NCBI GenBank assembly: GCA_000708835.1
Contig: DF237330.1
Span: 1-64,000 of the forward strand
Origin: Klebsormidium nitens
Taxonomy: Eukaryota; Plantae; Klebsormidiophyceae
Length of the DNA stretch: 64,000 nt
Reading direction: 5' to 3'
Of the stretch, positions 24,833 through 64,000 are shown piece by piece. Every line of letters starts with the position of its first letter. Position 1 is the stretch's first letter. The notes beneath the pieces were generated by a model. It made no database searches. It was not told the DNA's origin and saw only the letters and a list, made by a program, of their open reading frames with translations. The position numbers and the translations under genes are program-made.

Positions 24833-25492
24833 NNNNNNNNNNNNNNNNNNNNNNNNNNNNNNNNNNNNNNNNNNNNNNNNNNNNNNNNNNNNNNNNNNNN
24901 NNNNNNNNNNNNNNNNNNNNNNNNNNNNNNNNNNNNNNNNNNNNNNNNNNNNNNNNNNNNNNNNNNNNNNNNNNNNNNNNNNNNNNNNNNNNNNNNNNNN
25001 NNNNNNNNNNNNNNNNNNNNNNNNNNNNNNNNNNNNNNNNNNNNNNNNNNNNNNNNNNNNNNNNNNNNNNNNNNNNNNNNNNNNNNNNNNNNNNNNNNNN
25101 NNNNNNNNNNNNNNNNNNNNNNNNNNNNNNNNNNNNNNNNNNNNNNNNNNNNNNNNNNNNNNNNNNNNNNNNNNNNNNNNNNNNNNNNNNNNNNNNNNNN
25201 NNNNNNNNNNNNNNNNNNNNNNNNNNNNNNNNNNNNNNNNNNNNNNNNNNNNNNNNNNNNNNNNNNNNNNNNNNNNNNNNNNNNNNNNNNNNNNNNNNNN
25301 NNNNNNNNNNNNNNNNNNNNNNNNNNNNNNNNNNNNNNNNNNNNNNNNNNNNNNNNNNNNNNNNNNNNNNNNNNNNNNNNNNNNNNNNNNNNNNNNNNNN
25401 NNNNNNNNNNNNNNNNNNNNNNNNNNNNNNNNNNNNNNNNNNNNNNNNNNNNNNNNNNNNNNNNNNNNNNNNNNNNNNNNNNNNNNNNNNNN
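24833..25492. other. Assembly gap (660 N)
   Basis: Run of N. Both flanks carry the same 14-mer ggatcctttggtgc. The long X-filled ORFs in the track are artefacts of this gap. Confidence 0.99.
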
Positions 25493-43500: not shown

Positions 43501-46500
43501 CAAGGCGGAGGACCTGCGCAGCCTCTTCTGCACGATGACCCAGGAGGTGGGGGCCTCTCTGGAGGTGTCTGTTTGACGAGAATTCTCGGTGGATACCTTT
43601 AGTGAGACGATTTGTGATGTTTCTTGTTTGTCCTTCGTGTCAATTGCTGCCACGGGCAGGGTCCTGCAGTCTGATACGATGTTGGTGAGGGAGGTTTAGA
43701 ATGGTGGGTTTTTGTGGGTAGCAATCTTGTCGCTTGGCCGGGGCTCGGGTGTTTGCCTGCTAAACTTCCAACTCCTCAAGTCCTGCCAGGATTGTCTAGG
43801 TCTGAGGTTCGTTTGCATCCATACCGGACTACCGTCTTGAAAATGTGCCAAGAGAAGGTCGGTGTTAAAAAGCCATTTATATAGGAGGGAAATCAAGGGC
43901 AAACTGCTGCGGAGGCTTCTTCAATTGTGTCAAGACACTTCTCCCGGACAATAACGGTCTCGTTTGACACAAGGTCTGATGCAGATTCCTGTTCCACACA
44001 GGTCCGCATCATCATCGTCAAACTAGCAGATAGATTGCACAACATGCGGACTCTGAGCCACATGCCTCCGCACAAACAGGTGGGTGCAATCCTCCACAAG
44101 CTTTTGATCTCATTGCCGGTGTTTGCCAAACAACGGCTCTCGAGGAACGTTTAGATTAAAGTCAGCCGGACTGACTAAGCTCAAGACATGTTTCGGGACT
44201 CTGTCTTTTTCAATACGCAACAGGGTTTAAAGCAGTAGTACAGGAGACAAGAAGTTGCCAAGGAGGTTTTGAAAGTCCCTCTTTCTTTGATGCAACCAGG
44301 GGGTGAGATCCACTTTCGGCTCAATGTTGAATGGATTAGCGCCAGTCAGCGATTCTCACCTGTTCTGTCCCCAACGCAGCACTACTTTGTGACGTAGGAT
44401 GTCTGCCCTGTGTGCTACAACGCATGCTGCAGACCCGCTCACTTTCCCTTGCAGCATCACATCGCCGACGAGACGCTGCGCGTGTTGGTTCCCCTGCTTT
44501 CGGTCATGCGGCGTCTGTTATATTCCTTTAAGAATGCTAACCCGCCTGGGATACAAAACACAGTACTCACCTAATGTTGGAGCGATACTCCTCTCAGCCC
44601 TTCCTATGACTGCTGCATCATTACAGTACGTTGCTTACACTCTCGCTCTATCCTGTAGCACTACATCGCCGACGAGACGCTGCGCGCTTTTGCCCCCCTC
44701 GCATGTCTTCCGGGCATGTACCGATCAGGAGCGAGTTGAAAAGGAGTTGTCATTCCTCAACACTAATTGTACGGGCATAAAGCAGGAACTGCTTGGATGT
44801 TCTCAAACTTTAACCTCCTCCGCAGCCATACATCGCCAACGAGGCGCTGCGCGTGTTTGCTTCGTCGCGCGCCTTCTGGGCATGTACCTCATCAAGAGCG
44901 AGCTGGAGGAGATGTCATTCCTCAGCACTAATTGTGACCTGCACAATCGCAGAAAAGACAATTGATGTATGTTCTAACATTCCAACTTTTTCCCACAGCA
45001 CTACATCGCCGACGAGACGCTGCGTGTGTTCGCCCCCCTGGCGCGGCTCCTGGGCATGTACCGCATATTGAGCGAGCTGCAGGAGCTGTCGTTCGTGAAT
45101 ACTAATAGTGACCTGCTGTTTACATGTTTTCACCTTATCGACTTTCCCCCGCAGCACTATATCGCCGACGAGACGCTGCGCGTGTTCGCCCCCCTGGCGC
45201 GGCTCCTGGGCATGTACCGCATCAAGAGCGAGCTGGAGGAGCTGTCGTTCATGTACAGCGCGCCGCAGCAGCACGCGCTCATCCGGCGCCGCATGGACGA
45301 GTTGCGCCGCCAGCAGGAGCCGGCCGTCGCCAAAGCCAAGCGGGATTTGGAGGACCGTCTCTCCAAGTGAGTCATTGAGCCTTTCTATTCTGCGCTTCCC
45401 TTTCTGGTGCATCCTGATTTGTTAATCCGCTCTTTCTTGCATAGAGTAGCAGTGCTACCAGCAGGAGTTGCTGGCGCCAAAGCCAAGCAGGGTCTGGAGG
45501 ACAGCCCCTCTTAGTCACTTTCCAAGCCTCAGTCAAATCAATGTCTAGCGGGCCGAATTTGTCGACCAATTAGTACAGGACTGTTCTGAGCCTTTCAATG
45601 TGGGATGGAATAGACCGTTCACCCCAAATGGAGGGTTGAAGTCTCTGGCGGGCTTGCTGGACTCTTCCATAAGGATGTCACGCTAGTCGTTTGAGGACTT
45701 GAAAGGTCGACGTTTGGGATATAGCGGCGTGGTGGGCTCCCGATGCTGGATCTTGGAATTGTTGGCAGTGACTGCACTGCTTTCTGGATCCGTTAGCTTC
45801 AAGGCAGGTTAGTTTCTCAGAAAAGGTTTCATACATCCGGCCAGTCCGAGCATTGCAGTTTGAACTTTCCGTCACCTTGCTTCAACTTTATTCTCGTTGA
45901 AACAGCCGGCCTGATACCTCTTCATTGCCTGCCGAAATTGTAAGCAAGTCGGTGGTTGACTGTGCTGTCGAATCGTTGCAGGGATGCGTGCCTGTGTTTG
46001 ACGCACAGCTTCCGGGTTGAAACGCTGTGCAAGGAAGCCTACAGCATCTACAAGAAAGTCAAAGCGAGCGGGTGCGAGATCGAGGACGTCTGCAACATTG
46101 CCCAGGTGAGGAAACAGTGATGACGGCCCCACCATCTGTTATGCACTGGCGTGATTATAGCGTAAGAATTGTAAGAATTGGAAGAATTGTAAGAGAATGC
46201 GCATGTTTGCATCTGTAGTGTAGTGTAGGAAAAAGGGCTTTTGTTGCAAACGCTATGCGGTGCCAAAAAGAATCGATGAGCGGCGGTATCCAGACACTGC
46301 TTACTTGGAGCCAAGGCCGTGGTCCGTTGACGTTTATTCCCACTCTGCGCGATTAAATGCGCTGATAGTCGCATTGTTCCTCCATGTATGAAGTCCTAAA
46401 AACCTCATAGACCGCATCACCTCTGGGTCCCATTCTGAGTCTGCAATAGGACTTTCGCAACTCAAGCGCTATTCCGTCCTGCAGTTGCGCATCATTCTGG

Positions 46501-49500
46501 AGCCCAAACCGGTAGCCAGCTGAGCCTCGCCCCACCTGGCGCGACGTTCATTGATCTGCATTCCTGCTGTGACTGAACTGCGAGAATTGGTGTTCTCGAA
46601 GTCTCGTCACTTCTCTTTCCAATTTCAGGCTTAGACCAATCGCTTCAATTTCATCCCGCAGTTGCGTATCATTCTGGAGCCCAAACCGATAGCTCAGCTG
46701 AGCCTCGCCCCACCGGGCGCAACGTTCACCGATCAGCAGCTGTGCTACCACGTGTTGGGACTGATCCACAAGATGTGGACACCTGTCCCTGGTGCGGTGA
46801 AGGATTACATCGCCACCGCGAAACCCAATGGGTACCGGAGCCTGCACACGACGCTCCTGCCGCTGGGGGCCAAGCCGTTGATTCCGCTAGAGGTGCAGGT
46901 AAGATTGTTCTGGTTGCTTACAAAATGCTCAGTTTTGTTGAAGCTCGCTGGTTTACGATAGTCTTCGGACGGGTTCCTGAGAGGGAGAATCCGACGGTTA
47001 CAAGGAGCCTGCACACAACGCTGCTGCCACGCCGTTGATTCCGCTGAAGGTGCAGGTAAGACTCTTCTGCTCCTTTCCTCCTGCCTGCCTGAAGTGTGAC
47101 TGGTTTAAGTCCGTCTAAAGACCCGAAGGACGCGAGGTTAGAGCTCAGAGGGTATGGGAGCTTAAACAGGATGCTCCTGCCGCTAGGGGCAACGCCGTTG
47201 ATTCCGCTTAAGGTGCAGGTAGGTTTCCTTTCACTGTCGTCAAGGTCGGCAAGTCTTTTAAAGTATTCTAAGGAAATTCTAAAAAATCACGATGTAGGAA
47301 AGGTCAACCGCTATTTGAGGGCTGCCGACCGGGCTGCTCATCAGCGCTGATTGTGTTCGCAGCTTCAAGTAAAAAACGCCACGACGTCCTTGATCTCCGT
47401 AAGCTTCCTTGAATGTGTTGCTACTGTTGGCAGTGTGCAAACCGAGAAGCTTTTGCAGGCTTAGGAAGCCTAATAGACACCAAACAGTGTACTTTGTGCT
47501 TTCGAGCCCGTGGTAACTTGTTTGGTCGGTCGGCCCTATGATATTCGTGCCACCATGCAGATCCGGACCGCCGATATGGACCGTGTTGCGGAGTGGGGCG
47601 ACCACTGTCGAGCGGGCGGCGGCGGCCTGGTGTATACGGAAGCCAGTACTTCAGAAAGCTCGGAGGACGGTGAGTCTTTTGAGTTCATTTTGCATCGTTC
47701 CTTCTCAGAATCTGCAGGTTTCCTTCGTTTTGGCTTGGGCTGCTATGAACGAATATGCTGGCTCACCGCAGGAGCCATGTTAATAGAGTGCAACACCTCC
47801 GTTGTTTGAAGGACTCTACTCTTGTGATGTCAATCTTCTAGCGGAGCTCGACCAGATCCGGCCAATCTCTTTGATGCTAAAGCGTCCAATCCTTACCTAA
47901 AAGATATCGTTCACGGCAATACCTCGTTCCGCCAAAGTTGTGCCCGGCTGGGGTCTCTGCCCTGCCATCGAATAATGTACCTTGCCTTTATTGAATCGAA
48001 CATCTTTGAGAAACTAGTTCGTGAAACACAGCAGGTGGGCACCACTCTGTGCCTCACCCAGTCTATCAAACAACGTTCTCACTCGCTCCAATGTCTCCCC
48101 CCATGCCTTCTTAAAATCCAGACATCTATGCAGGACCTCTTTGTGGTTTCCCGGGTATCTGCATCAGCAGTTTCCAAAATGGCCCGACTCTCCCACTGGC
48201 CGCCAAAAAAACCTCGGTTTCTCAGGGGCGATTATCCATTTAGTTTCTTTCTTCCTTTGTTTTGCACAGGTAACTGCAACGGAAACTCCCTCTACGGCCC
48301 CACTCTCCGCCTCGCCCGCAGCCGCGGTCCGGGTCTCGCGAACGAAGAAATAAAACGGCGTATGAAGTGGCTCGACTCGATCCGGGAGTGGCAAGAGGAG
48401 TTCGTCGGCAACATGACCGCGCGCGAGTTTGTGGATACCATTACTGGGGACCTGTTTAGCAGCCGCGTGTTTGTGTTTTCGACCAGCGGGGAGCCGCTGA
48501 ACCTGCCGAAGGGGGCGACGGTGATCGACTACGCATACCAGAAGGATACGCAGATGGCGAATAGGATGGTCGGAGCGAAGGTGAGGGCGTGCGATGTTCC
48601 TGTTCTCGCTTTGCTTCAATGCGGCAAAGCCAGCTTGGGCTGAGATATACCACAATTTTTGAAGTACCTGATAGGGGGGGTGACGAGGATTGACTACGCG
48701 CAAAAAGAGGATATGCAGAGGGCGAACCGGATGGTCGGCGTGAAGGTGAGGGCGTGCGTTTTTTTGGGTCTGTTCGCTCTGCTGTGCCATAGTCAACTGG
48801 GCTTGCTTATGTTGCATTTTCCAAATTGAGCATCGGCAAAAACTACACGTACCAAAAGCATACGCAGATGGCCAACAGGATGGTAGGCGCAACGGTGAGG
48901 ACGTGCATTGTGTCTATTCTCGCTTCGCTTCGCTGTGCCAAAGCCTGCTTGGGCTAGGGTATACCACGTTTTCCGGATTCCGGATAACCTGATAGTGGGA
49001 ATGAGGGAATGAATACGCGTGTTCAGAGAATACGCAGATGGCGAAGGGGATGGTGGGAGCAAAGGTGAGGGCATGCGATGTGTCCGGTTTGTTCCCGCTT
49101 TCAAGCTGCCCTGGCTTCTGTTGCATTTTCCGAGTCGAGGACCAGCGATAGTGGGGGCCACGCTGACTCACTTGGGCGTACTAAAACGATGAGCAGATTG
49201 CGAACAGGATGGTTGGAGCGAAGGTGAGGGCGTGTGTTGTCCGTTCTCGCTTCGACCTGCCGCAGTTTATGCTGCATTTCTCGAAGCCCAGACTGGCGGG
49301 TAGGGGGTGCTATTTGACGCATGTGGTGTTTGTTTTTCCCTAGGAAGTGTCACCGTAATCAACGCAGAAGTTGGTCCAGAGACGGTGGGATCACAAGTTC
49401 AGCGAGGAAGTGTTCTTGATGTACCGATCTTTCATTTGCTTCCGGAGTTTGAACAGCTTAGGAAACAGCAGATTCCACTTGACCCTTTGGGGTCTTCTGT

Positions 49501-52295
49501 CTAGTGGCCTGTACAATGAATGTTACGAAAGCTAAACCAACCAATCGCTTGTGACGCGAATTGAAAGCTCTTTTCAATAACGTACTTCTTTTCATCTTGC
49601 GAAGCTCGTACTTCTCGTTATAACTGGAGAATGAGTCCCCATGAGAACTTCTTAAGTCTAGGAAGCCCCTTTATGGAGCATACGGCACTATGAGAAGGAC
49701 CAGGTTGAAGCAAGTAACTCTTTATGCAGCGAAAAGCTTTTTGACCAACATGTCATCCCGTCTCCAGGTAAACGGGAACAGCGTCCCCGTAAAAACGGTC
49801 CTTTGCAATGCCGACGTCGTTGAGATCCTGGAGTACGAGGGCGACAAGCGAAAGGCCTTCCGCCGACATCAGCAGTGGCTAAAGGACGCCAGAACGCGCA
49901 GCGCCCGGCACAAGCTGACGAAATACCTGCGCGAGACGGGCGTCACGCTCGGGGAGGAGTTAACCGGGGACTTGGTTAAGGAGTTTGTGTTAGAAGACGG
50001 GGCGGGGTCGTGGTCCGAACTGGTCGAGAGCAGCTCGTCCGGGGAAGACTCGGACGGCGTCTCGGACGGTGTGAAAAGGCGCGGGGCCGGTGTGAACGGG
50101 CACGGGGTGGAGTCGTTCGACACGCAGATAGACGAGGAGGAGAAACGGCTGCTCGCGCAACGGATCGAAGAGGAGGAACGGCGGGTTAATGAACGGTTAG
50201 CGAGCAACGGGGCCGCATCCCCAAGCTCGAACGGGCGGGTTAAGGTAAACGGGTTTGCGCGGCCCGGGGGATCCCCCAAAGGAGAAAACGAAGCGGAAAA
50301 CGAGGCGGGGGTGGTGTTCCGGGGGCATCAGCACCGGCAGCTGACGCAGTGGCACGAAGAGGGGGAGGCGAGCGTGATGTGGTTGGACGTCCGGTGTATG
50401 GACCGAAAAGGTGAGCCGCCTGCTTTTATCTGGTCGGCGAACGAGACCCGGTTCACAAAGAAAGGACCCGTTAGCATTGTCGATTGGCGAGACTCGGTCT
50501 GAAAAGGAAGGACCCGAGATTGTCAAGTGAGCGCCCGCTTGCATTCGGCGGAGAGGTCGTACCGTAAGCTTGAATACCTGGATGTCAGGATTGCAGTTTT
50601 GTGTCTGCATGTAGTCCAGAAACTTAAAAGAAAGCTCAAGCGAGACCCGGGTGTCGGTGCTGAGAATAGAACCGCCGATCACGTATGAGCTTCTCAATGT
50701 GGACGTCTGCAAGCAAGACTGAAGCTTGCATGATTTTGTGTGTATGAAGTTCTGATGAACTTACTGAAAGGTGGACTTGTCTGTCCATATTTTTACGACA
50801 AAAGAAGCACGAGTTACCTGCCTTAAGATCTGGTTGGGAAACGGAGGCCTATACGCAGGGGTTTCTTCTGCTATTCGAAAGAGTCTTCTGCTGTGCAGTA
50901 ATTCTCCTCCCACCATCTTCCATTGTTTGCCCAAGTGCAAGCTTCGAACTCCGACCCCTTTTGATCCTTGCTCCCAGTCCCTAGTAGGATGAGCTTCACT
51001 TAAAGGGACGCGATAGTGGGTTCCCTCCCTGGCTGCAGCTCATCGAGCTTTTCTCTTTCTGAAAGATTGTCGTCAATGCAGTAGAGGCAGAACCATATCC
51101 AGGTTAAGTCTTCAAACCCTATCCATCACTCCGGAGGCCCTGAAATTGAAAGCCGCAATTCTCATCAATCACGACCGCAGTATTTGTCTGCGGCTCATGA
51201 AGGTTGACTTATTCTGGCCACAGGTCTTCTAGCGGACGTTTCTCAGATCCTGTCCGCATCCGGGTTCAGCATCAAATCCTACACCGGGCACACCGTCCGG
51301 GGGTACGGGATGATGCTGTTTGGGATCGAGCTGGAGGTCAGCCAGCAAACCAACGTGGACAAGATGGTAAGCGCTTCTGTTCTCTAGGGTTTTGCCCTCA
51401 GGAGGGGTCGTCGGGGCCCGATTTTGTAGCGACACTTTTGCAGCATTTAGTGTCTGGTTTTTTGCCGCTGACGTCCAATTTGTGTCAAAACCAAGCCGTT
51501 GCCCTCATGTCCCTAACGGAAGGGTTATGCATCACTGATGCCCCGTGAATAGCCAACACAGAACTCTGTTGCTTGGGTTTGAGGTGGAGGTTTACCGGCA
51601 CACCAACGTGACCACTATGGTTAGCGCTTGAGCGCTTGAGTCCTATTCTCAACACTTGTGTTTGTTTGGTCGCTAAGCCAGCGAATCTAGTACCCAACAG
51701 ACAACTCTAACGTGGCCAAACCGGTACGCGATCAAGGCTATCATTGATTGCATTAGTTGTCGTACCTTTAAGGACGCTGTCTGTTTTGAGCCCGGAGGGT
51801 ACCCACCGATGGTTCATTGGAAACGAAACGGTGAACGTCGAGTCCATTCCTGGACCCCGTTTTAGTTTCTGCGTTTGGGTTTGGGATGCAGCTTTGCCCG
51901 CAAAGTAATGGGAATCTCTGGTTTTGAATCTTGCTCTCTGCTTTTGCACTGGAGAGGAAAGTGCGAAACAGAAATAAGTGGTAAATCTCCACAAATCCCT
52001 CGTAGTTCCAGGTTGTACTGTATCTGCTTGATGGAATTTTTGGTAGGCATGCCCCCAAAGGGCTTAAGACGGTATGCTTGGTATGGTCAAAATGGTTGAA
52101 AGCACCTCATTGCTCGCAGTGGCCGGATTCGTGCAGAATTTTGCATCCTGGTTGGTCACCCGAAAGATCCTCACATTGTGGCAACTCCTTCCGCAGGCGA
52201 CTGTGCTACAAGAAGTTCTGAGGGTCCAAAATGTGACCGGTTGGTACATCGGTTGCACGCTACGGCAAGCCTCGTTGATGTCGAAGAGCAAGTAG
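40582..52295 (+). CDS. RSH1: RelA/SpoT homologue of the RSH1 clade (HD hydrolase, degenerate synthetase, TGS, ACT), about 908 aa
   Basis: Exons 40582-40627 (least certain), 41445-41776, 42312-42377, 42804-42896, 43313-43546, 44002-44079, 45155-45366, 45982-46105, 46662-46898, 47561-47669, 48270-48580, 49768-50410, 51224-51366, 52197-52295, phase-consistent. Motifs: VTPQTLWQGLKP, AHDGQRRKSGEPYIIHP, AGLLHDTVED, KLADRLHNMRTL, LCKEAYSIYK, KDYIATAKPNGYRSLHT, WLDSIREWQEEFVGNMTAREFVDTITGDL, LPKGATVIDYA, DRKGLLADVS, VTGWYIGC. Confidence 0.92.
44455..45154 (+). repeat. Four tandem copies of the RSH1 exon-7 acceptor plus the first about 100 nt of the exon
   Basis: ag|CACTACATCGCCGACGAGACGCTGCG.. copies begin at 44455, 44659, 44826 and 44999; the true exon begins at 45155. 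Similarity rises toward the true exon. Confidence 0.9.
46470..47225 (+). repeat. Echoes flanking RSH1 exon 9 (one acceptor copy, two donor copies)
   Basis: cag|ttgcgcatcattctggagcccaaacc at 46485 versus the true start at 46662. ccgttgattccgct.aaggtgcag|gta at about 47032-47060 and 47195-47222 versus the true donor at 46898. Confidence 0.85.
48660..49240 (+). repeat. Four decayed copies of the RSH1 exon-11 end plus donor
   Basis: cagatggcgaataggatggtcggagcgaag|gtgagggcgtg (true donor 48580) is echoed with donors near 48746, 48894, 49064 and 49223 (about 150-170 bp period). Confidence 0.85.
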
Positions 52296-54159: not shown

Positions 54160-54620
54160 ATGCCAGGGTACCCGGTACGCGTATACCTGATGACCACTGA
54201 GGGAGGGGCGGTCACTCTCTTAGTGGTGGAATATAGCCGCGTCCGCTCCTTCGCAGCAAGGACCCTGAGCCTCGACTCGTCACGAAACTCCCCAAAGTGT
54301 GGATCCTGTACATTCACGTATCAAAACCGTACACACCGTGTTCGTGTACGCCTTGTGTACGAGGCTGATGCAGGGCCTGTGACACGTGTACGAGATCGGC
54401 ATGTCGTACCCGGCGTGCACAGGAGAGGCATGGTGCTGTCCGTATGCAGCTCATGTACCAGAATGACATGCGAATGATGCAAGCTGATGTGGCCGAGTCC
54501 CGGCCGTGCCGAACTTGTACACGTTTTGCACACAAAACGTGCAGTTCTGACGTGCCCACTGTCCGGGCTGACACGTTCGATAAATAGCTTCACGAGGAGT
54601 TCCTACGTTGTACGCTTACA
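54160..54620. promoter_or_regulatory. GTAC-dense tract with a small hairpin, downstream of the transposase
   Basis: 11 GTAC in about 445 bp. Perfect 9-bp stem cacgttttg (54520-54528), loop caca, caaaacgtg (54533-54541). Confidence 0.35.
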
Positions 54621-54947
54621 TCCTTTATCAGACAGTAAACAGACTTCGTTCTTTGTAAGCAATCGAGGGCTGGTTTTTGATAAGGTGGGCGGCACGGAAA
54701 CATCCATTCGATGCAACTCAGCTTGTACAAGGTGCAATGGTCCAGAATCCATTCACGCTTGAATCATTGATTCACTTTGATGTGGCACCTGACGCCGGGC
54801 TGAAACGGAGCCAAACCGGGACACATATCGAAAAACTTGCAGCATGATTTGAGAGAAGGGAGCGCCAGGAAGGTCCACGAACCGATTAATGTACAAAGGA
54901 GCCACCTTGCGAGCCTGCAACGTAGCTTCGTTGTCTTATGATTCTGA

Positions 54948-57900
54948 TCAGGACTCGACTTTGTACCACTTGAATCGACTCAAGTAGAAGCTTTCCCCTG
55001 AGTCGTCAGCGAAATCCGGAGCTATGTACACCATTCGCAGGATGCTATCCAACTCAATGACGTCGTAGAAGTCTTTTTGCTGTCCACCGGAGGTATACTT
55101 CTCCCACTTCAATTGCCTGCAAGTCCTTGCATCGAGTCTGTCCGAACCGTTTGCCCTCTTTTGTACCTTGTAGTATCGAACAAACGCAAGCTCTCTGGTC
55201 TTTCCGTGCTGATCGACCAGAGAAAACAAGAGTCGGAGTTGCCCGTAATACTCTGGCCCTTCCGGGTCATCTTCGGCCGCTTTGATTGCCACGTCGTTGT
55301 AGTACGGCCGCTCATCGCTGAATGAGACCGCCGCGCGGGCGTGCATCACCGTCGGCTGGAAGCGCGCTCCAATACCTGGAGCGATAGCGGCAGCGTTCGC
55401 CACGTGCACCTGGCAAATGGTTGTGAAGCGGTCAATGAGCAAAATGACCGGAATAGATCCAGGTTTACAAGAAACGGAACGAATCTTGGAAGCCAGACGT
55501 GTCAAACTCAGCTCTTTCATTCAAGGGTCATCGCTTTGGATTCGGTTGCAGCCTTCGCACTCAGCCTTCGCACTCAGTGATGTCCTAGAAGTCAGTTAGA
55601 AACACGGGAACGGACTTCGATTCGAACCGGTCGAAGATAGAGAGCGCCGCGGTTCAATCGAAGGAAAAGTCTATAGAGAAATCTGTAAAGTACTGCTTCA
55701 AGTCCACAAATGCAAGGAATTACACTACTTCATTTCCAGGCCAGATTTGCAACCAATTCTTTATGCCTTCTGTGACTGGTCATCAGCTTCTACCAAAAAA
55801 AACCTACCTCGGAATTCAGGCAATTGGGCTGGTTTACTAGCAAGGCACCACCTCCTCGCACGCCGTGAAGCCCGCCCGCCAAGAAGACACGTGTACGTCG
55901 CTCCAGCTGTCGCAGCTCCGGTTGCGCTGCAACCCGAGCAGCAACAATATCGCGCGTCTCTGTGGAGCGGGGCAGGTCGGTGGCGGTCTCCACTCCGCCT
56001 GGCTGCAGCCATGCCCATTTGAAGGTCGTTCGGGTACTTTGAAGTGTGTGTCCGACAGCCAAGGCCTGCAAACAAAACTAATCCAGTTACATGGTCACGA
56101 AACGGACGCCGGAAGACTGCCTATCAGGTTGTTACCTGTTTGCAGGAAGAAGCTGCCGCAAAATGCATCCAGCGCAAGACCCACATTGAAGGAGAAGTAG
56201 AGCCGTGCACCGGGCGACGTGTTCTTTCAACGCCCACGTGGCCAGCGACTTTAGTGACCGACAAAATGGGCTCCTTTGAAAAGGTTCAGGAATGTTCCGT
56301 CACAATCCTGGTCACTCGCAAGAATGGTCGTGAAATCAACGAGGCCAGACAAACAAAAGCAAAGAGGTTGATGGAATGAGGGGTTCTTGTCCAAAATCTC
56401 TGCATAAACTTCGCTCAGTTGATGCAAGCGTCTTGAAAGCATCTTCTCAGAAAGCCAGCCAGAAATAAAGTATACGGGTTCAAGGGAGGCTCACCTGCCG
56501 GGAAACCACGGTCTGGTGCCGAACTTTGGGAGGGTCCCGCACGAAACTGCCTCCGTAAAAGGAAATGCGGTCCGATATGTTTTCCCGTCGTTGATTGTGG
56601 CGAACAATCTGCAGAAGATGCGAAGTACTTCTTGAGACAGAATTGCAGAATCACAGAATCCCAGAATCACCGCCTCTGCACATGACATTTACGTTCTAGC
56701 TTCGAGTTCCCCAATAGCATTTTAAAGCGACAAAGCCCTCACAGCACGACTTAGTCCTGAGAAGATCGAAACCGACAACGGTAGGAGGAAGCGCAAACGA
56801 CCAAGCCTCACTGATGCGAGAGTGGAAGCAAAAGAAACGCTCAGCACGACTTCCCAGATGTAAAACTCCTACGGCGAAGCCGGTGATCTTGAGCGTGGGG
56901 AATCTGCTCACGTGTCAGCAAGCTCAATCAGACTGAGTTAAATGTCGAAGCACATCGTCGGAGGGATACGAAACTTACGGCTCAGAATCAGAATTTGTTC
57001 ACAGAGGAGTAGGCATGTTAGCAGAAAAGCGGAAAAGCGGAAAGAGGGAACAACGGACAGCGAGTAGTGGTCCTGAAAACGTGGCCGCAAGAGCAGCGAC
57101 TGAAAGGAAATTCCGTTTCTGCTCCGTTGCACATGGGATTCGCAGGACACCGGTGGCCGGAAGCTGAAAGGCCACAGCGAAAACTCCTCAAGATAGAGAC
57201 GGCTGGTGGCAACTTCACCAGCCATCTCGGATGGATTGAAGGGAGCTCCGTTACAAGAATAGAACTGACACTTGCGGCGAGACCGAATGTTACGGAAGAG
57301 GTTCATTGCCACGGTGACGGACTTACGTAGGATTGCGTTTTCTCGATCGCAATGGTGGGCGGGAAGTCCGATGAAAAACAAGATCTTGAATTAAAGAAGG
57401 ATCCAAGTTTACATAGTTACCTGTCCCTCTGCGTTTCTCTTGTTCGACATTCTGTACGGCTTTTTGGACGTTTGGCCGTGGAAGCTTTCTCCCGAATCCG
57501 TGTCCAGGTGCTTGAGCAAGCCGTTCTGCCAGATGTTGTCGGGATAGTGCGGGATCTGGTGGAACTTAATAAAGTTCCACTCGGACTTCTGGTATTCGCC
57601 GAAGGTATCAAGAGCGGATTGTCCGAATCTGAACGAGGAATTAAGTCCGCCCTTCAATTGAGGACATTAACAAAGCGTTTATGACCAGAAACTGATCATC
57701 AGATCAACGTTGGGGTCTCTCGGGAAGCTTCGAAAACTCGATCTCTAGGATGTCTTCGAAAGGAAGGCTGGGCACACAGAATGGCTGAGAATTTGCCGCC
57801 AAACATGCATTTTCAAATAGAGAAGCGTGTCTGGACGCACCAGTTTTGGCTTCCACACTGATCGGCCACTGATTGAGCAAGAGAGCAAGGAGCTCGGCAG

Positions 57901-60900
57901 GTCCTTAGCAATGATTGTTCAAGTAAAAGAGTGCTCAGAGAAGCGTTTTTAAGTTTCACCTGAGTCCCAGCTCTCGACACTCCTCCAGGCTCTTCTCGGT
58001 GTGGTACTGAGGGCGGTTGCGGCAGGTAAGCAGCATGTACCAGTCCAAGAAGCTGACGAAAACGTCGGTGACAGGATCACTGCCGTTGACTTCTTCGAAC
58101 AACCCATTGATGGCAAAGACGAAGACCTGCTCGTGTTGATTGTGCGAGAATCAGAAAAGACAAATGTGACGCTGAAATGGTGCAAGTCATGGAAGACATG
58201 TCACACCGGCCCCGACCTCCTCAAGATATTTTTGTTGTAGATATAAGTTTGAACGTTGAGATCGCTTGTTCGGACACAAAAACACAAAGCCTTGCTTTGT
58301 CACAAGCAATCAACCATTCAAAACTTTGTGACAGCAGAAGCAGTGATCACAGCTTTGAACCTTGTTACCGAGCTTTGCGATCGAGCCTGTTTTGGTTACA
58401 TGTACTTCTTGAAGAAGGGACTCTGCAACCTGATCATTTGCCCGCTTCTCTCCATCAAAACTTTTCGAGCTGAGACGACCATGAGAAAGATAAGAAATCA
58501 GTCAGGAGTCGGAGGTTCCAGCTTGTCCTAATAAAAGCTTCGCTAAAGTACCTATTGTAAACTCGAAGATGACTTGCCTGCATCACGTTGCGTTGCTCAA
58601 AAGCTTTAAATTTCTTCGTGCTTCGCACGTATCTTCCTCGGCCAGGGACACGGAAGCCTGGGAATCGTGGCATCGATCGAAGGCGGGAGTCGATAAGCCT
58701 GAGCTTGCGAGCGCCTTCTCGTGGGCTGTACTTGGCCTTCACGTACTCACGTAATGCGTTCAAAAGATGGACCCATAAGCCGAGATCGATGCCATGGAGT
58801 GTGTCGGGGGCGAACGCATTGAAGCTATTGCGAAGTTCAGATGGCACCTCTGGAACCAGATCCGTGAAGAAGTCCCAGAGAGGCCCCTGCCAGGTGAAAA
58901 GGTTTTCCAATCAACCCTTGCCGCGGTTTTGAATGTAACCACTCGCCGGTCGTCTTCCTCAACGACCCCTCCAAAAGTGAAAACTTCATCATTGGCTCCA
59001 ACCTAAGTAGAATTTTAATTTGCAGACGGATGCAAAGCCTGAAGAGCGGCAACAACAGTCGGACAAACGCTCTCGACGGCGAGAAGATTTCTTGCACTTT
59101 TGAACATTTGACTCGTTTTGCGCCGGGTACGCCTGCGTTGTCACATTGCCAGGCCTAGCTTTAGAGCTGTAGCCTGTGACTTTCAAACTTGACCTATAAA
59201 GTGTGGACACTTACCTTCATGGCAATCGGAACACCAGCGTCCTCTAGCAGCTTCTTTGCCCGAGCAATCTCTTGTCGGTTTCCGGCCAACTCGACGGACT
59301 TAAAATGCTCAATGACGCGCCTTGTGAAGACCTCAGTGCGCGCTTTAAAGTTCACATCCAAAGCATTCAGGCGGGACGGAGCAGCTAAGCATTGCAGGCA
59401 ACGCCCACTTCGCACAAAGGCAACGTAGTAATGTTCCTGAAGGTCGGCAACGTAGGAGTGCAGATATGGAAACACGCAGACACGCGCCCCATAGGGGTCG
59501 GTCATCCACACTCCCCTGCAGATGGGAGGAAACAAGACCGCTTCAGTACTGTGGACACAGAGTAGAGTCTCTCGATTGGCGCTTGAGAACACGGTAGACT
59601 GTCGGTCCCCCTCACACCCGTTCTGGTTACGTGTAGAACGCGCTTCACAGCCCCGTGAAACACCCGACAGAATTTTGATCAGCCCCAGGTCTTTTAGATG
59701 CCTCCAGCACTCCATTCAAGGTGCGCGCTGGAAGCATTGGATTTCTAGAGACTCTCTCCAGCCAATGTTGGACAGTCCCCGGGCTGTTGATCGAGGCTCT
59801 GGACAGCGCTCAAGTTTAGTGGCACGCTGGACGAGGCTCACAGCCCGGAGGAATTACCACTCTCCAATAGCCCCGGGCTATGAGTTGCTTACTAACTTGG
59901 CAGCGCGCGCTGGTCCGCTGGATCTGGACATTAGCAGCCCGGGGGAACAATCCTTCCTGCCGTGAATTGATCAGACATAATCTTTTTATGAGGAAACAGC
60001 CCCTCAGAACCTGCTCACCTTGAGCTTGCCTCCTTGAGAGGAGTTAACCAAAGTGTTAACTGTTGGTACATGAGGAACATCTTCCGGCTCGTCCAATTGA
60101 CGGTGTCTCGTATCAGCCCTGAAGAGACGAAGATGCCTTGCAAACAGTCAATGGCCAAGCTTTACGGTCTTTGAAAGATTGGGTGCCCAAGTTCTGCTTG
60201 AATTTGATGGCGTAACTGCATTTTTTTGAACAGTCGGATTCTATAAAAGACAAACCGTAAGAGGAGGCTTTCTCAAAGAACATTGACAAACCACAGTCCT
60301 TGCGAAAAAAGACAATTAACATCATTCTCCAATCTGCTGGATGACGAGCCGACTTCCAAATTTTAGCCGAATCCAATCAGAAGGAAAGCGCACCATGCCA
60401 AAGTAGCTAGCATAGCAAATTGACCTCAATGCTTACCATGCTCTGGCTGCTCTTTGAGCTGTGCAAAGTAAGCTGCCAGCTCGGACCCAACTCCGAGGCG
60501 CCGTTGCATCTCGAGATCAGCATTTTTGATGGCCAGGAGCCCGGCCCAGCCAGATGTGTGCAAGTCATTGGAGACAGCAGTCTTGTCGCTATACGGAGAG
60601 ACCGCGAGTAGCACCGCATCCTCTGGAATATACTTCTGAGACAAAAGACAAAACGCATAAGTTCGGTCTAGTGGACGCGAAGCTCATACCGCAGGATGGG
60701 CATTGACAGCCTAGCAGGATTGCGCTGAATCGAGGTCGACTCGGCTGAGATCTACAGCCTCCATCCAGACTAAGCACGCTACCAGATCACCAAGACATCG
60801 TACCATGGCCAACACCATGTTCCAAGTGACCCAGATGCTTCAGCAACAGCCTTCTGTTTGCAGATTACTTCAAAAGCTAGGCCATCGAAGTGCAAAAGAG

Positions 60901-62224
60901 GAGTTCATGAAGAAGGGAAGGACTTGTTTACCTGGAGGTTTATCATCTTCTCAGCGGACGAGGCATCTGTTATACAACGGTCTCCCGCATTGTTGAATTC
61001 TTTCCGCGCGCTGAGTTTTATATGGCCACGCAGTTCGGGATTAGCGAACATCCTTCGTAGCAGCTCAATAGGATCTTTGCGGCGGAACCAAAGGTCTTGG
61101 TGATCAGAAGGGAGCCTCATGTTTTCCACAATAAAGCCCTGCAACCAGGAACGGAATTATTCGAGCACCATGCCTCAACGATGAACAATATCAGCTGCGC
61201 AAAGGCTTGCTTTGGGAATCAGAGTGTCACAAAAGTGCCTCAACTTGAGGATTAAGTGCCCCTGCTTGTCAGAGAGACATTTTGCACAACTCTTGGTGTC
61301 TTTGCTAGAGGATGTAAAATAGAAAAAGGGGACTCTGAATCTGGTCCCAACACATCACTAAAAATAAAGAACAAGCTGGAGCTGACAACCTTGTGGAGTT
61401 TTTGAGCTGCAACATGAGCCAGTTCTGAGCAGCATGCGGTGCCATCAGAACAGACAGCTCAAAAGAAACAAAGACCTGCTCACCTCGCTGTCCACATGAG
61501 GGGTGTCCTGATACTTCCTCAATTCTCTTGAGTTTGAGAACGCTGCCCTCCACTCCTCTTGGTTAAAGTCTGGATGTAAAAGAATGCGCAAGAGCCAGTC
61601 TGCCTCGCTGTTGGAAGACCCGCTGCCCTGACCATTGTTTGTGAGGAAGTTTGCAACCTCCACTGAGGTTTTAAATCCCCGAGGCACAGCGTCATCATCT
61701 GGCTCAGGGTGCGGGCCGTTGCCGCCCCCACCACCAAGCCTATCATGGGACTTGAGCCACTCTTCTGGATCAAAAGGAAGCAAGGGTCTAGGAGCCTCAA
61801 AACCATCTTCAGCAGCAGAGAAGGGGTCTCTGTCCTCGTCCGAGCTGGATTCTGAAGCGGAGCTGCTAGATTCATCGTCGCTAAGCTCAAAATCATTGGC
61901 AGCTGCAGCCCCAGAGTTTTGTTCAGGCTCATGGTCTAGGGGGTCTGATCGGAAGCTTTGTTGATCTAAAGACTGGCTGGCTGCAGGAGGGGTGCCTAAG
62001 GGATGCACTGAACCAGCGGGCGCTTGACCCTGTTGGCGATCAGCAGCGATGCGAGCTGCCGCCTCCGGAACTTCTGGCCTATCTTGCACTAGCTGTTGTG
62101 GTGGGTGCCAGCCATCAGGCAATCCACCTTGTCCACATGCTCCAAGGCCCCGTCGATGGTTGCCGAGACTCTGAGAAGTGTCAAACTTTTTTCCACAAAT
62201 TGGGCAGGGGAAATTGCTGTCCAT
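54948..62224 (-). CDS. Plavaka-type (CMC/CACTA-related) DDE transposase with an N-terminal zinc finger and a C-terminal BAH-like domain, about 1021 aa, 11 exons, no stops or frameshifts after splicing
   Basis: Exons 62224-61484, 61138-60932, 60635-60437, 60118-60019, 59515-59215, 58886-58578 (GC donor gcaagt), 58126-57960, 57628-57421, 56608-56495, 56065-55808, 55409-54948; 3066 nt in total, in frame. Motifs: CPICGKKFDTSQSLGNH; WFRRKDPIELLRRMFANP; AVSPYSDKT; LTPLKEASSRGVWMTDPYG..VFPYLHSYVADLQE..RCLQC; PDTLHGIDLG; IDSRLRSMPRFPGFR; NFIKFHQIPHYPDNI..DTDSGESFH..KKPYRMSNKR; YYGQLRLLFS..VIELDSILRMVYIAPDF. Confidence 0.85.
54948..62224 (-). mobile_element. Putative Plavaka/CACTA-like DNA transposon (minimum span; termini not identified)
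   Basis: Intact transposase gene as above. I could not pair terminal inverted repeats or a target-site duplication inside the window, so it may be larger than shown or domesticated. Confidence 0.6.
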
Positions 62225-63784
62225 GGCAATTAGGTCCAACTTCGGTACAAAAATTTAGCTCACATGATCAGATTCGCTTCCCGTTAGCTCCTTTGAAGCG
62301 AAAGGTGATGCACTGTGGCGCAGCATGCGGCGCAGGCGCCGCTGCCAGCAGCCTGAGCTCCTTCCTTATTGGGTGCACCCTTAAGGGCCCTGCCCAAGAT
62401 AACAGTACTTAGCCCACTGCCAAGTCAGCCGGGACTCAGCCTGCTTGATTTTTCAGGTGTTCAAGCTTCAATCAACGCATCAGATTGGACGCATGGCGTC
62501 TGCTGATCTTCTAAGCTGCTCGAGCGCAGGGTGTTACTCATCCTTGGTAAAAGTTGAGTACCTAGTCTGAATGTCTGAAAGGAGAATGACAACCCAGGGC
62601 CAATGACAAGTGTACCTACAGTAACAGCTTCCTTCTGCTTCCACTAGCTGCTGCCACTGGTATCACTGGTTCAGTACGGCGTATAGGTACCTGTAGGCTG
62701 TAGTCTGAGGTAATGATCCGATAACACGAATTATTTTTCCCATTCGTAAAGTCATAGACCCGGATTCCACAGTCAAAAGTTGGGATTTCAAAATGGTTGA
62801 TTAATCATGAAATGGTCCTCAGGAGCCCCAGAATGGCCAAGCTCAGATCTAGATTCCCATTAAATTCCATTACAAATGGCAACATAGGGCATTTTGAGTT
62901 TTGTCAAAATCAGCATAAATAAAGCCGCTTTTCTGGTCGGATTGTCGGAATATAATATGTAATAATAAAAATGGTTCGGAATCACCACGCGTACTAGGTA
63001 GGTATTGTACATGCATGACTCTGTCCCATGATGTCAGGCCCGGTCGGACTGAATCTACCGTACCTAGGTCCTAGTCCGAGACTCCAAGATCTGCCAAATG
63101 TTGCCATTGGTACCGGCCACTCTGATTTCACGTGCGCGTCCATCTTCATGAACGCATGCAAGCCATAAGATCTTCAAGTGCTGCAACCATGGCCTTCCGA
63201 TCAAGTCTTGAGCCCAATCAGGCTGGCCACGTGTATCTCGTGGGACGTCTGAGTCACATGAGCGCACTCCCTCTCAGCCAATCGTGTGCTACTTTGAGGC
63301 AACTTGCATCTGCCGGGCATCTGCCAGGGCCGGTGCCGCTGCCTACCAGCTGTAAACAGGAAAGACTGAGCTGACGCAACATGCTGATCAATAGGGGATC
63401 AACGGCAGCTTTCGTTTCAAATCTTTCAGCCGTCAATGCAATGGCCGCCATGTTGCTAGCCGTCACAACGGCGGGGAAAAAGGGCGGGAGCTGGGCCTTT
63501 TTGAATCTAGGCGTGAGCGGCGTGAGTGAGCTGCCACTGCTTGCATTGGAAGTTGGAGGCTGCTTCTGGGAGTGACAGAGCAGGCTCTGTCAGCAAGCAG
63601 CTAGATTCTGATACCGGTACTGGGCATAAAGCTTTCTTTGGATCTTAAGCAGCCACTCAGAATTGCAGAAGCTTTCTTGAGGGGACAACGTCACCTACGG
63701 TCCAGCCCATCCCAACCTGAAGACATCGCTTCTTGATGGGGTTTTAGACAGCAGTGTTTTACTTTTTTCCTGCAGCCTCTCACA

Positions 63785-64000
63785 ATGAGCTCAGCCGATG
63801 ACGATAATCCCCGCATGATTAGGCGTTCTCAAAGGGAAAGGAAGGAGAATCGAGCGTGGACTCCTACTAAGCAAGTGCAGCGACACGACGTTCCCACTGT
63901 TGACCCTGATGCAGAGACATGTGAGGGATCTGAAGGGGACTCGCACACTCCGATCCGCAATGTGAACGCAAGACCTCGACGGGACTATGTTCCATCGCCG
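63785..64000 (+). CDS. 5' part of an unknown protein, open at the window edge
   Basis: ATG at 63785, 9 nt after a strong acceptor (ttttttcctgcag, 63775). MSSADDDNPRMIRRSQRERKENRAWTPTKQVQRHDVPTVDPDAETCEGSEGDSHTP.. runs 72 codons with no stop before 64000. Confidence 0.55.
   Translation, partial: MSSADDDNPRMIRRSQRERKENRAWTPTKQVQRHDVPTVDPDAETCEGSEGDSHTPIRNVNARPRRDYVPSP

Follow-up and report, generated by a model that had tools for sequence, protein, structure and literature searches.

Plavaka elements and the Klebsormidium locus

Plavaka transposases have been described from fungi (Iyer et al. 2014; PlavakaA and PlavakaB, Kojima 2025, PMC12730594; Pfam family PF18759), and the family has also been reported for streptophyte algae, chlorophytes, a moss and red algae (PMC13519894; bioRxiv 10.1101/2025.02.11.637652; 10.1101/2025.02.07.637104). 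Some of the streptophyte and green algal elements are reported as potentially active, and the red algal ones as giant. Here we analysed a stretch of 64,000 nucleotides from Klebsormidium nitens (contig DF237330.1; called the window below), which carries a Plavaka-type transposase gene of 11 exons on its minus strand, close to the right-hand end. An initial annotation, made from the sequence alone, had implied that a Plavaka gene in an alga is a surprise, a view that is out of date now that streptophyte, green and red algal elements have been published. Our analysis indicates that the gene is probably the transposase of a cut-and-paste Plavaka DNA transposon (CACTA/EnSpm-Mirage-Chapaev or CMC/CMCT clade), autonomous or recently autonomous, and that the host in whose nuclear genome it lies is a streptophyte alga of the Klebsormidium type.

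The gene shares its core with the fungal Plavaka transposases, two of its exons passing the gathering score of the family profile, and it has the same order of motifs (D ... D ... C(2)C ... H(3)H ... E). The fungal and the algal proteins are both long and have a conserved C-terminal region. In contrast, the identity between them is low, and a search with exon 5 reached no fungal protein at E<=0.001. The window gene further differs from fungal Plavaka in its ten spliceosomal introns, and a TET/JBP gene was not seen anywhere in the 64 kb. Plavaka elements end in TGT..ACA or CATCA..TGATG (CA..TG in the wider clade) and make target-site duplications of 2-3 bp.

The Plavaka candidates of Archaeplastida that were reported with the Spirogyra pratensis genome (PMC13519894), and the EnSpm-Plavaka elements of Auxenochlorella (bioRxiv 10.1101/2025.02.07.637104), are of one transposase family with the window gene and share its wider host group of streptophyte and green algae. 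The window gene fits the conclusion of the former report that Plavaka has long been inherited vertically in Archaeplastida. The main text of the two reports describes neither a Klebsormidium element nor its gene structure. The giant Plavaka elements of the red alga Bostrychia moritziana (bioRxiv 10.1101/2025.02.11.637652) are of the same Plavaka/EnSpm lineage. However, their accessory genes PAG1-3, which encode a DNA methylase plus SET protein and a ParB-like 2OG oxygenase, were not seen in that portion of the element which falls inside the window, and there is no sign of massive proliferation here. With canonical CACTA/EnSpm elements (Transposase_21 and relatives) the gene shares the clade, the putative DDE (Asp, Asp, Glu) chemistry and the C(2)C plus H(3-4)H insertion; short repeats in a subterminal position would be a further common trait. 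The Pfam matches of the window gene are to Plavaka, and no exon gave an EnSpm-type family match.

Structure, splicing and motifs of the transposase gene

Lists of open reading frames (ORFs) hold only fragments on the minus strand over 54948-62239. Read across splice sites from 62224 to 54948, the 11 exons form a single frame that stays open for 1021 codons up to one terminal stop (Table 1). A script that tracked phases and stops over the junctions gave a coding sequence of 3066 nt with zero internal stops. Intron length ranges from 296 to 812 nt; nine of the ten introns are GT-AG, while intron 6 is GC-AG and has its donor in the classic context CAG/GCAAGT. The start, the end, the 11 exons, the length of about 1021 amino acids and the one GC-AG intron had all been proposed in the initial annotation and were reproduced by our exon reading and the phase script.

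Table 1. Exons, motifs and repeats of the Plavaka-type transposase locus (positions in the window; a slash marks the splice site).
Feature	Position	Strand	Remarks
Exon 1	62224-61484	-	247 codons; start ATG 62224-62222; zinc-finger-like motif, acidic low-complexity linker
CPICGKKF	62183-62206	-	exon 1
Exon 1 donor GAG/GTGAGC (intron 1)		-	canonical splice signals and open frame alone
Exon 2	61138-60932	-	69 codons; Plavaka core begins here
Exon 3	60635-60437	-	66 codons; YSDKT with putative first catalytic Asp
YSDKT	60579-60593	-	exon 3
Exon 4	60118-60019	-	phase 1 in, phase 2 out
Exon 5	59515-59215	-	YVADLQE (putative second catalytic Asp) and RCLQC (C(2)C motif)
YVADLQE	59434-59454	-	exon 5
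RCLQC (C-x2-C)	59389-59403	-	exon 5
Exon 6	58886-58578	-	PDTLH motif; GC-AG intron donor
PDTLH	58794-58808	-	exon 6
Exon 7	58126-57960	-	boundaries kept in L001
Exon 8	57628-57421	-	HQIPH (H(3)H motif) and SGESFH (putative catalytic Glu)
HQIPH (H-x3-H)	57547-57561	-	exon 8
SGESFH	57478-57495	-	exon 8
Exon 9	56608-56495	-	38 codons; RNA contig
Exon 10	56065-55808	-	86 codons; RNA joint and L004 alignment
Exon 11	55409-54951	-	153 codons; stop TGA at 54950-54948; conserved C-terminal region
GTGTACG cluster	54328-54392	.	four 7-mer copies (three direct, one inverted) in 65 bp, 556-620 bp past the stop

To assess the splice junctions, four public runs were compared with positions 55300-61299; runs that carry the species label of the source contain small parts of the window. 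The RNA evidence consists of assembled low-depth contigs, which inform on presence and splicing but not on expression level. Mismatch-free spliced contigs from two studies exactly skip introns 2, 4, 6 and 9. The joints of exon 2 with exon 3 and of exon 4 with exon 5 were found in contigs of run X6, and the GC-AG intron 6 is skipped in runs X7 and X9, which come from two different studies. A contig of run X7 covers 56494-56611 and joins to 56064 (intron 9; joint 56064/56494). The 15-nt loose end of this contig at 56611 corresponds to the end of exon 8, and therefore intron 8 could be placed at 57420-56609. An ORF at 56941-57390 had been considered as exon 9 and was dropped, since the RNA contig joins exon 8 to 56608. 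The match of a further X7 contig (contig 13) stops exactly at the exon 7 donor, 57960, and its six extra letters misfit the genome there.

Taken by intron, RNA contigs confirm five of the ten (2, 4, 6, 8 and 9), and splice sites and phases are kept in diverged relatives for six (3, 4, 5, 6, 7 and 10). Intron 1 is the only one placed solely by its canonical splice signals and the open frame. The RNA check of all ten junctions that was suggested with the initial annotation thus gave contigs for half of them. Transcription of the gene is weak, and its splicing follows the predicted model. Because a frame of 1021 codons over ten canonical junctions, together with the Pfam matches and the RNA joints, lies far beyond chance, the predicted gene is real.

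All protein and profile searches were run exon by exon. The gathering score of PF18759 (Plavaka) is 26.3 bits, and two pieces of the gene exceed it: the piece 60905-61144, containing exon 2, matches at 31.1 bits (profile positions 41-101) and the piece 59194-59715, containing exon 5, at 37.4 bits (profile positions 200-275). Two related fragments, P0002 and P0003, also pass this score. Along the exons the motifs follow each other as YSDKT, YVADLQE, RCLQC, PDTLH, HQIPH and SGESFH, which agrees with the published Plavaka order D, D, C(2)C, H(3)H, E (Kojima 2025, PMC12730594). In the exon 5 alignment (A2), the D, L, Q and E as well as GRCL are invariant. The window copy keeps all three putative catalytic residues, and the motifs are kept in the relatives as well, save for a D to N change in one of them (L003, see below). 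The Plavaka call of the initial annotation, made from motifs, is therefore borne out by the PF18759 matches of two exons and by the motif order, and the six motifs that it named were all found at the expected places.

The two ends of the protein were less readily classified. The N-terminal region contains the zinc-finger pattern C-x2-C-x12-H, of which the fourth ligand is possibly C and not H (C2H2/C2HC-like); its zinc-finger Pfam matches reach about 22 bits against cut-offs of 25-27. At the other end, exon 11 is 70% identical to the related sequences P0006, L004 and L005 across all 153 codons, with the acceptor kept. Exons 10 and 11 gave no Pfam match at E<=10, and the C-terminal exon gave no PDB match by sequence. 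Two AlphaFold models of the C-terminal region had a predicted local distance difference test (pLDDT) score of 38.6 and 36.6, too poor for use. A 'BAH-like' C-terminus (BAH being PF01426), as had been proposed, is therefore unsupported. A language-model search placed the C-terminal exon closest to clusters of fungal fragments, some 150 residues in length, and DUF6830 is present in part of one such cluster; we take this as a lead only.

Relatives and selection

Five related contigs (L001-L005), 1.6-3.3 kb long, align with the window exon by exon and together cover the full lengths of exons 3, 4, 5, 6, 7, 10 and 11. The exon lengths, splice sites and phases are identical to those in the window, whereas the introns of the relatives cannot be aligned with the window introns. 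The identity varies between exons and relatives. L003 matches all 66 codons of exon 3 at 74% identity and keeps the boundaries of exon 4. Exon 5 is 79%, 65% and 35% identical to its relatives, exon 6 is 74-79% identical in L001 and L002, and exon 8 is 93% identical to L001. For exon 10, L004 is 74% identical over all 86 codons and uses the same splice sites.

Comparison of the window with L001 over 313 codons gave a nonsynonymous divergence (dN) of 0.109, a proportion of synonymous differences (pS) of 0.68 and a dN/dS of about 0.06. Against L002 and L003 (154 and 198 codons, respectively), the proportion of nonsynonymous differences (pN) was 0.18-0.19 and pS was 0.77, which is saturated, so that dN/dS is not computable for these pairs. 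Strong purifying selection has acted on the coding sequence, and the introns have meanwhile diverged past alignment.

With respect to intron 6, L001 keeps the GC donor (window 58576-58577; L001 ~1484-1489) despite near-saturated synonymous sites. L002 shows ...VMQ and then AS at the position of this intron, which suggests that the same donor is used there.

In contig L003 (positions 226-423, sample SRR14092360), YSNKT stands in place of the YSDKT of the window, which puts Asn at the putative first catalytic Asp; the exon is open and otherwise 74% identical. The copy may be inactive or the assembly wrong at this point, or the change may hint at a role other than catalysis.

A closer copy was present in run X5, a large 2024 run from a second organism. 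It is DNA-like, extends over 58518-61297 with the introns included and is 91-97% identical to the window. Within exon 6, 10 of the 13 listed differences fall on third codon positions. Some intron parts of this copy are swapped for unlike sequence, e.g. before 60515 and before 58518. The copy may be an orthologue or a member of the same transposon family in a related alga.

Other searches added little. Word-index protein searches with the exon 5 ORF and with exon 11 returned one fragment each and with exon 1 none; their length filter hides full-length proteins. A metagenome scan with the exon 5 alignment found nothing.

Mobile element, retained gene or relic

We regard the window copy as a candidate autonomous element with putative mobility. 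The N-terminal zinc finger would bind the ends of the element or its subterminal repeats, and an RNase-H-like core, with the D of YSDKT, the D of YVADLQE and the E of SGESFH, would cut and rejoin DNA; the conserved tail of 153 residues could have an accessory role. The left end of the element may lie near 54.2-54.4 kb, at the short repeat cluster past the stop codon. Four of the eight matches to GTGTACG/CGTACAC in the 64-kb window fall inside this cluster (54328-54392), a concentration that would be expected of subterminal binding sites in this clade; the cluster is possibly a block of such repeats close to the left transposon end. The 3' flanks of L004 and L005 have no nucleotide similarity to 54200-54950 and gave no help in placing this end. 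The right end, and possibly also a second gene, would lie past base 64000. Upstream of the transposase start, 62225-64000 contains no ORF with a Pfam match; this region also has the lowest CpG ratio among the regions measured (0.69).

Several observations weigh against this interpretation. Searches for terminal inverted repeats within the window gave only pairs at chance level, the left flank having no inverted partner, and neither a terminal inverted repeat nor a target-site duplication was demonstrated, with the presumed right end beyond base 64000. The 64-kb window contains one copy of the gene. Exons 3, 4, 6, 7 and 8 had no Pfam match when searched singly, being too short or too divergent to score alone, and because of this the putative catalytic residues were assigned, exon by exon, from motif order and published descriptions. 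The RNA support comes throughout from low-depth assembled contigs, and two short ones run unspliced over the exon 7 donor (57745-58013) and the exon 6 donor (58518-58606); these suggest intron retention, pre-mRNA or DNA carry-over in the libraries. Finally, the very low dN/dS and the conserved intron positions would suit a gene retained by the host equally well.

This last point leads to the alternative of a domesticated, Plavaka-derived host gene that is single-copy and immobile, has a cellular function and lacks working transposon ends, which we consider rather unlikely. It would account for the dN/dS of about 0.06 at saturated synonymous sites, for the identical intron positions and phases in diverged relatives and for the very few relatives found in very large libraries. 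The single copy, the left flank without an inverted-repeat partner in the window, and the expression and splicing of the gene would fit as well, as would L003, which is well conserved in spite of the N at its putative first catalytic D. However, in element lineages that survive, transposases are likewise under purifying selection when the lineages are compared. The window copy, moreover, keeps its three putative catalytic residues, and a repeat cluster typical of subterminal regions follows its stop codon. A related and unlikely version is that Klebsormidium-type algae have retained a Plavaka-derived gene that is no longer, or never was, a selfish transposase, all ten intron positions and a dN/dS near 0.06 being maintained across lineages with saturated synonymous sites, and L003 having lost the putative first catalytic Asp. 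If true, the Asp replacement in L003 would point to a host function that does not need DNA cleavage. The absence of demonstrated ends inside the window could also mean that the copy is an immobile relic, with ends lost or mutated or the element silenced, and a frame that has just not decayed; the low RNA coverage and the partly unspliced contigs would agree with this. We think such a relic improbable, as the frame is open across 1021 codons, the third-position bias against the 91-97% identical X5 copy points to recent selection, and the right end falls outside the window in any case.

An origin of the gene in fungal contamination, in a mis-join of the assembly or in a fungus that passed it on by very recent horizontal transfer was considered because Plavaka was first described in basidiomycetes, and the fungal neighbours of the C-terminal exon in the language-model search would point the same way. 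The surroundings of the gene make this explanation barely credible. A multi-exon RSH gene, encoding a (p)ppGpp synthetase/hydrolase homologue, lies at 44000-51600 on the plus strand and ends ~3.4 kb from the transposase stop codon; RelA_SpoT and TGS domains were found in its plus-strand ORFs 46662-46961 and 47975-48643. The sole run of N in the window (24833-25492; 660 N, an assembly gap) is far from the transposase, and there is none between the two genes. The GC content and the CpG ratio of the transposase gene are those of the rest of the window; the CpG ratio, tried as a mark that would set the locus apart, was discarded since it matches the host genes. Moreover, spliced transcripts identical to the window are present in runs with the source's species label from two independent studies. 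The chance of contamination or of a mis-join is very small, and the plant-lineage host assumed in the initial annotation is upheld by the RSH neighbour without a gap, the matching base composition and the identical spliced transcripts.

As to a transfer from fungi, a HMMER search with exon 5 (100 residues) against 1.84 billion representative proteins gave no fungal protein at E<=0.001; a query of this length is weak at such a database size, so that distant fungal homologues are expected to be missed, but a recent donor is not. Only two true relatives were found, both short ORF fragments from Logan contigs that share the algal intron positions. Two other matches (P0004 and P0005) were rejected as spurious and of low complexity. 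The lack of a fungal relative at this threshold, the common intron positions and the strong purifying selection argue, at the level of sequence comparison, for a long residence in algae and disfavour a recent fungal transfer. The gene belongs to an old lineage under steady selection in algae, in agreement with the early presence in Archaeplastida for which the report on Spirogyra argues (PMC13519894).

The locus is not a new kind of system, as both the Plavaka family and its presence in algae were already known. Its value lies in the organism and in the state of the gene. Klebsormidium serves as a model of the algae from which land plants arose, and with its intact, transcribed and spliced transposase the Plavaka locus is a concrete candidate active element that could be of use in tagging or in studies of transposon control. 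In addition, the conserved intron positions and the absence of close fungal relatives support, at the level of a single locus, what has been published on the age of Plavaka in the plant lineage, namely that the family is an old resident there and did not arrive recently from fungi.

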